This document shows positions 3,952 to 14,500 of a stretch of DNA of 22,716 nt, one piece after another. A program made the position numbers and the translations under genes. This stretch comes from Zygophlyctis sp. KS116. Lineage: Eukaryota > Fungi > Chytridiomycota. The notes below the pieces were generated by a model. The model was not told the origin of the DNA, did no database searches, and was given only the letters and a program-made list of their open reading frames with translations. Every line of letters starts with the position of its first letter. Within the stretch, counting starts at the first letter, position 1. Location: NCBI GenBank assembly GCA_054661495.1, contig BAAFSQ010000160.1, forward strand, positions 1 through 22,716, written 5' to 3'.

Positions 3952-4794
3952 ATGGCTGATCATCTTGCGTCGATTTATGGAACTGAGAAAGACAAGGTCA
4001 ATTGCTCATTTTACTTCAAGATTGGTGCTTGCAGACATGGGGATAGATGTTCTCGGAAACATATTCAACCAAATTTCTCTCAAACTGTTTTAATTCCTAA
4101 TGCTTATATAAATCCTGGACATTTGGCCGCTTGTACTCTAACAAAGGCTCAACTAAGGGAAAACTTTGAGATTTTTTATGAGGATATGTGGATCGGATTG
4201 TTTAAATATGGTCAAATCGAGGAAATAAATGTTTGTGATAATGTCGGAGAACATTTGGCTGGAAGTAAGTTTATTATACTCTAAATATTTGATGTGTATG
4301 TAAGATTCAAATATGAAGAAGATGCAGCAAAGGCAGTAGAAGGATTGAATGATCGTTTTTATGATGGTAGTTTAAACAAATCTTATGATAAGGAAGACCT
4401 TTATGGGCAGAATTATCTCCAGTGACTGATTTTGGTGAAGCTTGTTGTCGGCAGTATGAACAATCAGAATGTAATCGTGGTGGTTTTTGTAATTTTATGG
4501 TAATTTTTTTTTTTTTTTTAAAAATTACAGCATGTCAAAACTACAAGTAGGCAATTGAGAAAAGAACTTTATGAAGGTCAATTGCTCTCTCTAAAGATTT
4601 TGAAGCCTAATGGGGATGAAAGATCACAATCACCTCCTCCAAAAAGAGAAAGAAAGAGATCTAGGGAAAGAGATGATAGAAGAGATGTTAGAGATGATAG
4701 AAGAGATGATAAGAGAGGTAGGGACTCTTATGAGCGTAGAGATAGATCAAGGGATAGATACAGAAGAAGAAGTCGTGAGAAAAGTTATCGATAG
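3952..4794 (+). CDS. U2AF1: Splicing factor U2AF small subunit (U2AF35/U2AF23), 4 exons
   Basis: [37 protein letters not shown] (ZnF1), [34 protein letters not shown] (ZnF2) and an RS/RD tail. Introns 4265-4291 (GT-TG), 4367-4392 and 4500-4530. Confidence 0.97.
4265..4291 (+). other. Non-canonical GT-TG intron (27 nt) in U2AF1
   Basis: GGA A|GTAAGTTTATTATACTCTAAATATTTG|AT GTG TAT GTA. Only this excision restores the conserved GNVYV(R/K)F motif; the intron contains an in-frame TAA. Confidence 0.8.
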
Positions 4795-4823
4795 TGTGAC
4801 GTCAGGAGGGGAAAGTTAAAAAT

Positions 4824-7499
4824 ATGGATGTTATTCAGGGAGAATATCAAGTTTCTCGTAAAAAGATTTATAGCCTTTCAATGAAACCAGATGAAAGAGT
4901 CCATAGTCCAGAACCTGAGCTGAATAAGACTCCTTTATCCGCTGCGGAAGTTTCTTTCCAGTTTGATCGCTTTCGGACATTGGTAAGAGAAAAGGATGCA
5001 GATTTAACTAAATTGAAACATGAATTGATCTTACTTAAGCAGGTAAATAAAGGACATCACTGATCCCAGATTGAGCGCAGGCAACAGAAAGATATTGAAT
5101 CGTTCCAGGCTCAGTTTAATGAGGCACCAAAGATTATCAAAAGGTTACAAGGAGAAATAGCTCATCAGAAAGTAAATTTAATCAGTTAATGCTAGAAAAA
5201 ACTTAAACAGTATTTTACGCAGATTGAGAAGGAATCAAAACAAATCGCAAGTCTTGATGAGGACAGGAGAAAGCTCAGAGAACAGAATGAAAAACTGGAA
5301 AACCTTAATAATGAAAAGAGTCTACTGGAAAGATCGCTTCTATCCAAGAAACTTGAAGAGGCACGATCAAAAGCAAAGGAATCTGAAACATGTTTAGAGG
5401 AAGAGAAGAAAAAGTTTGAAGTATCTTCAAGAAATTTGGGAAATGACAATAGACAACTCAGAGGGAAAATCAATTCCATGGAAAAAGAAATATTGATTTT
5501 AAGGGATAGAACCGTGACTTTGGACGACGTAATCAAGGTAAATATAATAGATCAATTATACTTCTCTATATATTCTATGATCAATCTCTAAAATAAAGGA
5601 AAAGGATAAATTGATTGCCTCACTATCAATCTATCGATATAATGCTATACACAGAAAGGTAGAGTCTATTTGTAAGAGTTGTCTTAAAAGAGAAAAGGCT
5701 GCGGCAGAATTGAGGAGGAAGGCGGCAATTTTAGGTACATTTTAACGAAATAATGATCACAGAAAAATTACCTAAAATTTCTTCACCAGTCCTTTCAGTT
5801 GCTTCGAGTACATCAGTAATGGTTACCATAGCAGTTCCACAAAAATCAAAAACCGATTCTGTAGAATATTCTAGACTGACCCTGATATATTCAAGTGACC
5901 CCTCAATGCAAGATAATCATAAAGTATTGATTGATCTTGATGATCACCAAAGTATCTCGAGAAAGGCGACAATTACAGAAAAAGAATTCACGGCTGAAAA
6001 AGAAAATAATGAGAAGACAATTTCTCGAAAAGTCAAAGTCACAAATTTAGAATCTGGGAAATTTTATTTCTTTCAATTATTAGCTGGGTTCCAGGATGTT
6101 GATGGCACACCTACCGAGCTAGAGAGTATATTTGTTGATGGATTGCCAGAGCCACCTCCCAAACCAATAGCAAATATCAATTTTGATAATTCATCTATAA
6201 CAATTTGTTCAGAATTAGGATCAACAACTGGATCTTCTATCCAATCATATAGGCTTTATCATTCTGCTGATTATAAGATGAAAACAAATTTCCTAGTGGA
6301 TGAAGTCTCTGTAAAGGACTTACAATTGGTAGAAGGAAGGATTAAATTTGTATTCACAAATCCGGAATTGCGCCTTTCTCATTTTTTTCATATAACAACT
6401 GTTAATGGAATGGGAGAAAGCGCACCTAGTGAAGTTTCAGAAAAATGTATAATCGGTATATTTTTGATGATTTACTCTAGATTATCCTCCAAATCAACCA
6501 AGTAAGCCCATTATTAAGAAACTTTCTGCTACGGCTCTGCAAATTTCTTCACATGTAAAGCCAAATGGAGGATCTGATGTTGATTTTTTCATTATTGAAG
6601 TCTTGAATTCTAATGATGAATCGAAAAAAGAAATTAAAACTAATGTTGATGTCCTTTATGGCACCCAGTTGGAATATGTAATCGATGGTTTGGAACTAGA
6701 TACTACGTATGAATTTCAAGTGATTGCTCAAAATATCGTAGGACAATCAATTCCTAGTGAAATGAGTGAAAAAATAAGTCTTGGTATATTTTTAATCATA
6801 ATTAATCATGCTAGATGCGCTTGTGCCAATAGCCGAGGCTCCTAAAATTCAACTTGTAAGTACTAATTCAGTCAAAGTAATTTTCCCAAATATATCATCA
6901 ATCAAAAAACCAGTTTTAGAGCAATTCAGAATTTCATGGTCAAATACACCTGATTTAAATAGTGAGATGGCAACAACAGTCACTTGCGCTGTTTCAAATA
7001 CTGCTTTTGTTGTTGAAGATTTACCTGAATGCCAAACGTTTTATTTTGGTATATGCCTGATTGGAGAAAATAGTGGTAATTTTTATTAAATTTACTAAAC
7101 TTAGAGGGATTATTTTGTGAACCGATCCAGATTCATTTAGCATCAGCCATTCCTCTCCCAGAGTCTATAGCATCAACTCCTAGAATAGGCGCCTCTCCTC
7201 TGCCCCCCGTTTCTAGATCTTTATCTAGTCTTAGTCTATCGCAAAGAGCTCAAAATATGCATGACGGAGTTCCAGCCCACTTTCAATCCATGAGCCAGAT
7301 TGATGGAATGACTCCTAAAAATGGATCCCGTCGACAATCGCAAGTTGATCTATTAAAACAGAAATCTCGGGATTTCCATCACTCTGTTGATCAAGTCAAA
7401 ACCAAAACCTCTAAACCATCATCTGGACCGAGTGGACATGTTCCTACTTCTGCTGGTGGCCCAAAAGTCCCTCGTAAAAAAGGACAAAAGATTTTTTAA
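4824..7499 (+). CDS. Lebercilin-like coiled coil plus about 4 fibronectin type III domains, 8 exons
   Basis: N-terminal LKHELILLKQIERRQQKDIESF...EKDKLIASLSIYRYN resembles the lebercilin domain. FN3 motifs include VTNLESGKFYFFQL and IDGLELDTTYEFQVIAQNIVGQS. Introns 5043-5069, 5172-5195, 5538-5598, 5735-5762, 6456-6480, 6784-6814 and 7076-7104 give one open frame. Confidence 0.75.
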
Positions 7500-7700: not shown

Positions 7701-7745
7701 GGCTAATTATAGCATGGCTAATTATAGCATGGATAATTATAGAAT
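7701..7745. repeat. 15-mer tandem repeat x3
   Basis: GGCTAATTATAGCAT GGCTAATTATAGCAT GGATAATTATAGAAT. Confidence 0.85.
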
Positions 7746-7785
7746 ATTTAAGAGCAAATGCCGCAATCGATTTCTAAAAAAAACT

Positions 7786-8277
7786 ATGAAACTAACACTT
7801 GGTTTGATCTTCTTCTCCGTACTTGTAGCTGTAAACTCTGTTACTGGAGCTAATCCTAAGTACAATGATGGACCTGTTTACAACCCGAAAGGCAATCCGG
7901 ACCAAGTGATTGTAGAAGAAGATGAATTATGTGACAATTACTATCTCATCTGCAACCCCAGAGTGAAAGGTAGAAAGTATCTTGCTTGTGTTTATGATCG
8001 TCATTTAGAAGGAAGTTACTGTAAAAAAGTTGATGTTTATTATAACCCACCAAAAAAGGAAACAAAACCAACTGCAGAACCAAAAAAGGAAACAAAACCA
8101 ACTCCAGAACCAAAGAATGACGGAACAACAAAACAAACTGATCCCAAGGATGACGGAACAACAAAGGGCACTGGGATCAAACAAAATGTAATGGCAGCTC
8201 TTGTCAACGCTATTGAAAACAAACCGATAGGCAGTCTTCTAAACAATCGGATAGGCAGTCCTCCTGGCGCTGCTTAG
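7786..8277 (+). CDS. Small putative secreted protein with a 4-Cys domain and K/T/P/E repeats
   Basis: Signal-peptide-like MKLTLGLIFFSVLVAVNSVTGA from ATG 7786, four Cys, PKKETKPT(A/P)E x2, PK(N/D)DGTTK x2; no intron needed. Confidence 0.75.
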   Translation: MKLTLGLIFFSVLVAVNSVTGANPKYNDGPVYNPKGNPDQVIVEEDELCDNYYLICNPRVKGRKYLACVYDRHLEGSYCKKVDVYYNPPKKETKPTAEPKKETKPTPEPKNDGTTKQTDPKDDGTTKGTGIKQNVMAALVNAIENKPIGSLLNNRIGSPPGAA

Positions 8278-10159: not shown

Positions 10160-11338
10160 TCAATATAGCAAATGTGGTTTTGTCAACTATATTTAATTAA
10201 ACTAGAAAATTACCTTGTTTTGCATTAAAGAATGTTGCATTATACCAATTCTTAAATCCATTGTTTTAATTTCAGATTTCAAGGCTAAAACTCCAGATTT
10301 TATATTTATAAGAGGCTTAGAATCTGTCATTCCATTTCCTATTTCGTCCATTCTAGACTTTATAGACTCTAAATCCATAGATACAGATGCTAGAGTCTCT
10401 GAAAGACTTGAAACTTGAGAATTTGCCTTGTTAAAGTCTTGTTTAAATTCAGAAATTGAACTTGAAATTTCCAAATGTTTACTAGAATATTTTTCAAATT
10501 GTGACTCTAGATATTTTTCTCTAGATTTTATTTTTTCTAGAGATTTTTCAATTTCTGTCGCTAATTTACTCGTATATCCTAGTATAGAGTCTTGAATAGA
10601 ATTAATTTTCTAAAAATCTTAGTTAAATTACATACTTTATAGTGAAAATTCATAGTTTCTAAATGCATTCTCCAATTTCTAGAATCATTAGAATAGTTTA
10701 GTAGTAATGGAGTCACTCTTTCTACTTGTAAAGCCCATTCTTGCCTATCAACTTTTAAATTTGAATTTTGTAATTGTAAATTTGTAAAATCTTGTGATAG
10801 AGCTAATCCTTTAAAAGAAATTGATTCTTCCTCTTCTTCTTCTTCTTGCCATTCCTTTTCATCAATTTCCAGATTAGCCGTAATTTCTGCATCTTCATCA
10901 ACCTCTGCATCTAGAGTTTTATCATCAATTTTAAAAATTGGTTTAGAAAATACAATTCCTTTTCCCTTGATAACAAGATTACTCAAGTATTCTAGTACTT
11001 GAATGACAATTTCACCTGTTCCAGACTTTAATTTAAGTGGTGGAATTTCCTCTAGTCCGATTTCCTTGAATACATTTACCATATTACTAGCCACTACATT
11101 TGGATCATCGAATTCTCCTGGCACTGGAAAACTCTGATTCCCACATTCTTCAAGTAGCCAATGTACTAAATTTCCAAAGTAAAAGAATTGGAAATTTGGA
11201 TTTGCTGATAACAGACTGAATGAGAATTTATTTAATTTGGGAAATTGTCTTCTATAATTCTTAAATTTAATAAAAATACTTGATAACCATTTCCCTCTCA
11301 TAATCCAATAGAGTCAATTTATCTAGTACTCCACTCAT
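10160..11338 (-). CDS. IFT57: Intraflagellar transport protein 57, 4 exons
   Basis: LDKLTLLDYE, NPNFQFFYF, EFDDPN, PPLKLKSGTGE, EWALQVERVTPLL, WRMHLE, LEKIKSREKYL, MDLRIGIMQHSL. Introns 11252-11279, 10610-10635 and 10187-10213. Confidence 0.93.
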
Positions 11339-11513
11339 TCGCGAGATTAAATTCCTTTCTACTTGCGCTTAATATTACCGATGACCAATCTATCTATTAC
11401 TCGGGCGGTGATCAGCGGCGGTGATCAAGTGCATAAGTATTCAGACATTAAACAGATCTAGTCAACAACAGAAATCAGAAATCGCCCTAAAACAAGTTGA
11501 AACTCAAAAATAG

Positions 11514-14500
11514 ATGAAACAGTCTAAACTATCCTTTGGAAAAGGTTTAAAACAACCGTCAAAGTCAAAAACTACAACGACTGACAAACAAGAGAAAAAG
11601 GCGGTTGATCCAATGCAGTTTTTTAGTAAAAAAGTTGAACAAACTCCAGGACTCGTAAAGGGAGTTAAAAAGAGTAAATATTTCCATGATTCTGAAATTG
11701 ATTCTATTTTACTAGATAAAGCAGAAGAATTGGAAAAACCGTTACTGGATATTACTCTAGTCAGTGATGAAAATGTTCCTGTAGAGGCAAAAGACAATAT
11801 AAAACCTGTAGAGGCAAAAGATGAAACTCTAAAAGTGGAAAATGATTCTAAAATTTCTCAAGACTCTACAAAGGAAGAGGGGAAAAAGAAATTCAATTTT
11901 TATGCGCACAAGGCAAAATTATCACAGATGCCAAAGGCTCATGGCTCAAAAGAGATTCCAGTAGGAGAAGAAAATTGTTTAGGTGGTCTAGCGTTTGTTT
12001 TTACTGGAGAATTGTCTAGTTTAACCAGAGATGAAGGAGTGGATTTAGTAAAGAGATATGGAGGGTATATTTGAAATTCTAAATTTATAGGAGAGTTGTA
12101 GGAGCTCCTTCTTCAAAAACTTCATATGTCGTGGTTGGAGAAGAGGCGGGAGCTTCTAAATTGGAAAAAGTAAAAAAATTAGGATTAAAGACGTTGGATG
12201 AAGATGGGTTATTAGATCTAATTAGAGATTCTAAAACTCAAGTGGTAAAGACTCCACCAAAAAAGTCTCCTAAAAAGACTTTGAAAAAATCTGTAGAGAA
12301 AAGTTCCCCAAAAAAGGATATAAAGCATACAATCGAGTCAATTAAAAGAGATAATTTAAATGTTGCTGATTTATCTGTTGCTGTAATTAAGGAGATTTTG
12401 GAAGAAAATAAAATTGATACGGTTGGTCTAATAGAAAAGTCGGAATTGATTGCAAAGATGAATGAACTATTGGGAGAGAGAAAAGAAGATTTCGCTGTTA
12501 AATCAGACAAAGTTACTATTCAAATGATAAAACAGGGTTCAGTTGATGTATTATCCTTGTCTATTTCATCCTTGAAAGAAATACTTGAAAAGAACCATGT
12601 ATCAACGACAGGCTTACTGGAAAAATCTGAACTACAGAATGCAGTCAAAGAGTTGGCTTTCAAGTCTATTCCCCAGAAAAATAAGTCTTTTGATTTTTCT
12701 CAAGAACCATCTAGTAAAAAGCAAAAGATTGATACGGGAAAATCTTTAATAGATGCAGTGGATGATCAGCTATGGACAGTTAAGTATAAGCCAAAATCCT
12801 ACTCGGATATTATTGGAAATAAGTCCATTCTTGAAAAACTGTCCAAATGGTTAAGAGAATGGTATTTTACTATATTTAATTTATAAAGGCATCAAAATCG
12901 CATGAATGATTTCAAAAAGCGCGATGAAACGTCTAGCTGGCGGGCTGCTCTTCTCTCAGGTCCTCCAGGTATGTTTTTTTAAAGGTGATAAAAGGTATTG
13001 GAAAAACTACCATGGCTCATCTTGTAGCTCAAACTGAAGGATATGATCCAATTGAATTTAATGCAAGTGATGTTCGTAGCAAGAAAGCTTTAGAGGTATT
13101 AATATATTCTCCCAAAGTTTAGAATATTGTAAAGGAGGCTTTAGGCACAAAAAGTATGACTGAATTCTTTCCTGTTCTGGGAAAAGGGCAAGACACGGTA
13201 TGCAATTAATGCATTTACAGGTAGAAAACCAAAAAAACTGTGATAATCATGGATGAAGTGGATGGAATGAGTGCTGGAGATAGAGGTATATACCCCCAAA
13301 TCATTAAATACAAGGTGGAAGTGCCGAATTAATTAGACTGATTAAGAAAAGTAAGGTCCCAATGATATGCATATGCAACGATCGAAAATCGCCCAAAATG
13401 CGTTCATTGGCTAATTCTTGCTTGGATTTATCTTTGAGAAGGCCAACTGCACAGCAGGTGGAAAACCGTATTAAAATGATTGCAGCCAAGGAAGGATTAG
13501 ATTTGAAACCAAATGTAGTAGGTGAGTTGGTTGCTAGCACGTCTGCCGATATCCGACAGATTCTAAATATGCTTTCAACATATCGACTATCCCGAAATGT
13601 TATGACATATGATCAGAGTAAAAATATGTAACATTGATAATTTCTAAATTAAAGTGCTCTGAATGCGAAGAAGAATATTACCGTTGGCCCATTCGATGTG
13701 ATGTCAAAGATTTTTTCTCAATCAGGCTTTCGTTCAATGTCTCTGACAGAAAAAATTGAACAATATTTTCATGATTATTCTATAATACCTCTGATGATTC
13801 AGGTAATATATTTAATTTTATGAATAGGAAAATTACATTCGAATGTCTCCTTCATTAGCCAGAGAATCTGGAAAGACTCCTAAAGAAATAGAGCTTGAAA
13901 CTCTCGCATTGATAAGTAATGCTGCTGATGCAATCTCTCTCGGTGACATTTTAGATAATTCTCAGAGAAGGTAATAACCCCTTAATTAAATACGTAGTGC
14001 TAATAATTGGTCTCTATTGCCAGTTCACGCAGCTTTTTCTACTGTAATACCATGCTTTTATACACATGGGCAAATGAATGGAATGTTTAACTTTCCAAGG
14101 TATAATATTATGCGCTTATAAAGTAGTTGGCTGGGCCAAAATTCAAAATCGTCTAAAACTGGAAGACTGTTGCGTGAGCTTGCGTGCCACACTCGCATGC
14201 ATGTTTCGGGGGATAAATTAGAATTTAGAGAATCTTATATCCCAGCATTTGTATCTAGAATGTTTGATCCTCTTTCCAAACAAGGACAAGGTGGAATTAA
14301 TGAAGTGATTAGTTTTATGGACCATTACCATATTACAAAGGATGATTTTGACTGCATTAACGAACTTTTTATGGGGAAACTTCCAGATATACCTAGCTCT
14401 GTTAAATCGGCGTTCACAAGGACTTACAATAAGATGTCTCATCCGACTGTATCAACATTTAAGAGTAGCGGTGGAGGTGGGCATGGAGATGTTTCTCGAC

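Follow-up and report, generated by a model that had tools for sequence, protein, structure and literature searches.

A GT-TG micro-intron in the U2AF1 gene of a chytrid-like fungus and its probable place in a rare intron class

ARS2 is an RNA-processing factor. Its gene carries a GT-TG intron, a single mammalian case, that human and mouse have in common (Sheth et al. 2006, PMC1557818). Human U2-type TG 3' splice sites have been described solely where an AG within 28 nt offers the other choice, and as not working constitutively (Szafranski et al. 2007, PMC2374985). BG ends rank with the most used non-YAG sites in yeast that lacks Prp18 (PMC10711555), and in Fritillaria borealis, which has duplicated, divergent U2AF subunits, 95% of introns escape the AG rule (PMC13326754). 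Vertebrate U2AF1 has an isoform c (exons 3 and Ab), a premature-stop form under surveillance (PMC4402522).

We analyzed a window of 22,716 nucleotides (the whole stretch of DNA studied here) in which the first intron of U2AF1 runs from GT to TG. Like the ARS2 intron, it combines these ends with an optimal U2 donor; unlike the ARS2 intron, whose ends have been kept in both human and mouse, its TG is limited to one species. The human TG acceptors, some of them conserved between species, have the same U2-type donor and TG end, but here the TG cut alone gives an intact protein, the introns are 25-27 nt long, and TG is not the alternative to a main functional AG that it is in human TG-AG tandems (PMC2374985). 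The S. cerevisiae BG sites resemble ours in having a UG near the branch point with the terminal G kept; they are errors of a mutant, whereas here PRP18 is present and the gene product would need the UG. F. borealis likewise has spliceosomal introns without a terminal AG and a link to U2AF, but here such introns are below 1%, one U2AF1 was found, and its AG pocket is intact. The vertebrate U2AF1 pre-mRNA also has a premature-stop isoform, as is predicted here, but through tandem duplicated exons with canonical ends rather than a non-AG acceptor. In a literature search of incomplete coverage, neither obligate GT-TG micro-introns of chytrids nor a non-AG intron in U2AF1 turned up.

The gene is organized in the window as follows.

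3952 to 4264, forward strand: U2AF1 exon 1, with ZnF1 and the first part of the UHM
4265 to 4291, forward strand: U2AF1 intron 1, 27 nt, phase 1, GT-TG; the same in 7 assemblies of the species, while 7 other lineages have AG
4265 to 4270, forward strand: GTAAGT donor of intron 1, a form found in ~5% of donors; intronic part at the 99th percentile
4281 to 4285, forward strand: CTAAA, branch-site-like motif of intron 1; its A at -8 falls on the A peak of the genome, and it overlaps the in-frame TAA 4282-4284
4290 to 4291, forward strand: TG acceptor of intron 1; flanking context at the 96th percentile of canonical acceptors
4292 to 4366, forward strand: U2AF1 exon 2, the rest of the UHM; contains AG 4303-4304 (Arg codon, poor acceptor) and an out-of-frame TAG 4337-4339
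4367 to 4392, forward strand: U2AF1 intron 2, 26 nt, GT-AG
4393 to 4499, forward strand: U2AF1 exon 3, ZnF2
4500 to 4530, forward strand: U2AF1 intron 3, 31 nt, GT-AG, common to the sisters
4531 to 4794, forward strand: U2AF1 exon 4, the end of ZnF2 and an RS-like tail, stop codon 4792-4794

An earlier note on this DNA had proposed that U2AF1 depends on a non-AG intron, and on the basis of DNA and homology we agree. Its coordinates for the intron (4265-4291, 27 nt, GTAAGT start, TTTG end) were all correct. A cut after 4291 yields GNVYVRF, the motif it had said TG splicing restores; retention does run into the in-frame TAA, and use of the next AG, 4303-4304, does make a 40-nt intron and a frameshift into the TAG at 4337-4339. 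In-frame AGs farther downstream (54 nt and more) would remove the VYVRF strand. Exon 1 matches residues 1-105 of S. pombe U2AF23 and exon 2 starts again at 107, which leaves room for exactly one junction codon, as the TG cut makes. By this alignment, no cut but that at the TG is predicted to keep the protein in exact register with U2AF23. A relaxed gene finder that allowed all 15 non-AG ends chose the intron unaided, and it was the only robust non-AG intron among ~510 in 226 kb. Metatranscriptome contigs from three runs contain exon 1 and later pieces, and none covers the 4264^4292 junction. Of the features of a U2-type intron, the GTAAGT donor and a branch A in the usual place are present and the terminal AG is absent; a U12-type intron was ruled out by the donor, which is GTAAGT and not the U12 consensus GTATCC.

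A weak 8-bp AU-rich stem can be drawn between window positions 4285-4292 and 4307-4314, pairing the TG acceptor and leaving the AG 4303-4304 in the loop. Strain variants preserve this stem via a G-U pair, and the region folds no better than shuffled sequences (whole-region z +0.87). A species-private synonymous Val codon also makes a strong donor-like GTAAGA in exon 2 (window 4299-4304), overlapping the same AG.

By exon arithmetic, the protein has 252 aa. Compared exon by exon with S. pombe U2AF23, it has the ZnF1-UHM-ZnF2 order of the U2AF small subunit and conserves the AG-binding residues, which we took from the U2AF23 structure (PMC7505975). The AG-pocket residues F20, C27, R28, H29, C33, S34 and R35 are intact in exon 1, as are the equivalents of C149, R150, Q151, R159, C163, N164 and F165 in exon 3, and the equivalent of R145 is G, as in other chytrids. 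The closest named U2AF1 belongs to the chytrid Irineochytrium (76%). We found one copy in the genome, a 12.7 Mb assembly of 1175 contigs that may be incomplete. Over the 60 codons after intron 1, comparison with five sister lineages gave a pN of 0-0.014 against a pS of 0.42-0.56; the exons downstream of the intron are under purifying selection. With one copy found and pN near 0, the objection that this is a dead paralogue is unlikely to apply. The flagellar genes CFAP58 and IFT57 lie near the locus, and the source genome is seen in freshwater metagenomes. The source organism is a zoosporic, chytrid-like fungus, and the protein tree gives no finer placement.

We then compared the intron across strains and relatives. 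Six other metagenome assemblies of the species (L083-L088; ENA, Logan), with flanks up to 3% diverged from the window, carry an identical intron 1, TG included, so an assembly error at the TG is excluded. Seven other lineages, five of them sisters (L002, L099, L089-L097, L098 and L100) and two more distant (L122 and L123), have the intron in the same place, at 21-31 nt and always ending in AG. The TG conserved among relatives that the earlier note had looked to was thus found in 0 of 7. The TG-bearing assemblies form one well-supported branch of the protein tree, and since AG occurs in seven lineages including the outgroups, parsimony makes TG derived and AG ancestral. An ancient conserved sensor is ruled out by the AG in all other lineages. 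A metagenome scan for further loci returned only distant, mostly intronless ones.

Intron 2 (4367-4392) is present here and in the outgroups L122 (as GC-AG) and L123 and absent in the five sister lineages, a pattern that suggests a precise intron loss in the sisters. The L122 gene has U2AF1 introns of 21-22 nt (L122:595-619 and 700-721), one or more extra introns and a GC donor.

To describe the introns of this genome, we used a self-trained gene finder. Its training set was the window together with 200 kb from the rest of the assembly, and it gave ~505 predicted introns. Of these, 99% are 22-37 nt long, with a mode at 25-26 nt; 27 nt, which had been given as the modal length, is within the peak and is not the mode itself. 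The GTAAGT donor, earlier counted in about 3 of 55 introns, opens 27 of ~505 (~5%). A branch-like A peaks at -8, and in 481 of 506 cases the intron stops at the earliest AG that lies 23 nt or more from its start. An in-frame stop occurs in 86% of predicted 3n introns (partly a bias of the gene finder), a second AG lies within 13 nt of 47% of canonical acceptors, and only 4 predicted introns reach 38 nt. A 61-nt predicted intron at window 5538-5598, an outlier among introns of 22-37 nt and nearly invariant between strains, may be two micro-introns around a micro-exon.

In unselected DNA holding ~450 introns, the relaxed gene finder found no robust non-AG intron, which caps the GT-TG class near 0.7%. 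Those of its other non-AG calls that were examined could be replaced by a canonical intron, contained no in-frame stop, or fell at the end of a gene. Across the genome, a pattern count found 165 TAG, 40 TTG and 7 TCG ends following GTAAGT; against a calibrated expectation of 39.6, the TTG ends show no detectable excess, again implying a small class. The genome has genes for U2AF2, PRP18 and UPF1, in which every predicted intron ends in AG. We found no change in the spliceosome that would explain tolerance of TG, with PRP18 and U2AF2 present and the AG pocket of U2AF1 intact.

Further GT-TG introns were found, as listed below.

L125, 2135 to 2160, reverse strand: intron of PFK-2/FBPase-2 (PFK2), 26 nt; only the TG cut restores RIFNVG
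L128, 1852 to 1876, reverse strand: intron of ureG, 25 nt; only the TG cut restores AVTND
L129, 2947 to 2973, forward strand: intron of SAC1, 27 nt; assigned from frame and stop, not from homology
L132, 333 to 357, forward strand: intron of ureG in a diverged sister; TG kept, intron body different

The earlier note had named TG acceptors common genome-wide as a point that would refute its reading, and this holds in part: obligate GT-TG introns with the same strong donor occur in unrelated genes, although they are rare rather than common. The next AG past the TG lies at +13 in U2AF1, +24 in PFK2 and +26 in ureG, and SAC1 has none within 30 nt. The first AG would give an intron of 50 nt in PFK2 and 51 nt in ureG; in SAC1, the 61 nt from the donor onward contain none. 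All of these next AGs imply lengths outside the intron range of the genome, and the AG-spliced products of U2AF1, PFK2 and ureG would be frameshifted or lack conserved motifs. The four TG introns verified in this genome all end in YTTG and all start with GTA(A/T)GT, compared with 8.7% of introns overall (p ~6e-5, with ascertainment bias possible), which makes the strong donor a mark of the class and not of U2AF1. The sister ureG intron and L099 were recovered from one sample, and in L099 intron 1 of U2AF1 ends in AG; the U2AF1 lineage of that sample differs at 56% of fourfold sites. In four sister clusters, gene calls start on an NTG codon right before ureG AVTND, and these calls suggest that further sister lineages share the ureG TG. 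The ureG intron is the best-conserved member of the class that we saw.

We consider it probable that obligate GT-TG micro-introns of U2 type form a rare class found across the clade, that intron 1 of U2AF1 joined this class recently, and that no feedback is needed to account for it. With a near-fixed length and a branch A ~8 nt from the end, the 3' cut would be set largely by geometry. A near-perfect GTA(A/T)GT donor and a good branch region could let the spliceosome assemble without the contact between U2AF1 and AG, and ligation at UG would keep the terminal G and lack only the A at -2. The change from AG to TG in U2AF1 could then have been tolerated and fixed on the branch of this species. 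Splicing would probably leak to some degree, NMD would take up the retained or 40-nt forms, and a feedback specific to U2AF1 would not be required.

Some observations count against this explanation. One is the spliceosome described above, with PRP18, U2AF2 and an intact AG pocket and no change found to account for the tolerance. Within the species, intron 1 is invariant and other introns vary at 4-10% of their sites; we counted this against tolerance although the difference is not significant (p 0.05-0.35). Another is the identity of the gene: the chance that one of so few TG introns should fall in U2AF1, the AG-recognising factor itself, is roughly 0.15-2%, a real coincidence that speaks instead for an autoregulatory sensor. 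In such a sensor, abundant U2AF1 would reject the UG or pick the AG 13 nt downstream, both producing NMD substrates, and scarce U2AF1 would let splicing set by branch site and length use the UG; we regard this as possible but unlikely. The loop would be young and specific to the species, and its capacity to buffer itself may be why it was fixed.

Several properties of the gene fit such a loop. The protein has a strong preference for A at -2 (PMC7505975), and the pocket here is intact. When U2AF35 was depleted in human cells, 93 proximal 3' sites were promoted and 45 repressed, and most of the promoted sites were the weaker ones (PMC4402522). Among the four verified TG introns, only in U2AF1 does an AG follow at so short a distance as 13 nt; premature stops make the two alternative products unproductive, and UPF1 is present (the only UPF gene searched). 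Against the loop, introns of the same type occur in metabolic genes. An in-frame stop and an AG within 13 nt are both ordinary in this genome, at the frequencies given above. The supposed decoy at 4303-4304 scores at the 3rd percentile as an acceptor and would require a 40-nt intron, a length almost never seen here. It is also an ordinary Arg codon, common to the five close sisters, which have an AG acceptor.

Autoregulatory splicing elements are usually deeply conserved. The TG of U2AF1 is not, the 7 other lineages all having AG. A weak 3' site might equally suffer when U2AF is scarce, in which case the sign of the loop would be reversed. We hold only as a tentative idea, and a doubtful one, that U2AF1 recently gained negative feedback by losing the AG of its own intron, by way of the clade-wide tolerance of GT-TG, so that full-length protein would be made mainly when AG recognition is weak. 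That the GT-TG class is wider than U2AF1 is a firmer result than autoregulation of U2AF1.

A control acting on the whole class seems less likely still. Here UG ligation would depend on second-step fidelity (Prp18, Slu7, Prp22) or on growth state, and U2AF1, ureG, PFK2, SAC1 and others would be restrained together, with TG selected but not sensing U2AF1. The TG of ureG has been kept in lineages whose synonymous sites are strongly diverged, and loss of Prp18 does activate BG sites in yeast (PMC10711555). However, the genes share no evident pathway, and the U2AF1 TG was found in one species only. Reversion from T to A is one specific transversion, and we estimate that persistence over about five lineages has roughly even odds under neutrality.

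That the protein is made without the TG at 4290-4291, through retention with read-through of the TAA, the in-frame TG 4293-4294, editing of the RNA or another intact copy, is very improbable: the intron is 3n, a second in-frame TG exists, the RNA contigs stop before the junction and the assembly may be incomplete, but read-through would insert 9 residues in the UHM core and cannot account for PFK2 (26 nt) or ureG (25 nt), members of the class that are not 3n, the 30-nt TG scores at only the 7th percentile and would cost the protein a conserved residue, and the downstream exons are under purifying selection in the one copy found.

Membership in a GT-TG class remains our preferred explanation, and the locus looks like part of a rare rule-breaking intron class in a tiny-intron fungus rather than a proven self-regulating switch. 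If this is true, a fungus with several conserved genes, including U2AF1, that seem to require a GT-TG micro-intron with no other acceptor would run counter in nature to the human rule that TG acceptors never act alone and need an AG nearby. Its substrates of 25-27 nt would test to what extent geometry at the branch point, together with a strong donor, can stand in for second-step proofreading and for the recognition of AG by U2AF1. Gene predictors that accept only AG would truncate real genes in such chytrids, and an AG-only model of U2AF1 here lost the VYVRF strand. The feedback reading, if true, would give a very simple sensor of splicing fidelity.

Elsewhere in the window, a 182-aa ORF without a Pfam match (7729-8277) sits in a segment for which the syntenic sister contigs L098 and L099 give no alignment. 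In L099 (6100-6696), an NSE1 (SMC5/6) gene stands beside IFT57; it is absent from the corresponding place in the window (11338-11514). Downstream of U2AF1, a CRE-like TGACGTCA palindrome at window 4797-4804 begins 2 nt past the stop codon and ends 19 nt before the next ATG, and the 3' UTR of U2AF1 must overlap the promoter of the next gene. The palindrome is kept in most sisters and nearly kept in L089 and L123, and 5 of its 6 copies in 223 kb are near predicted gene starts.
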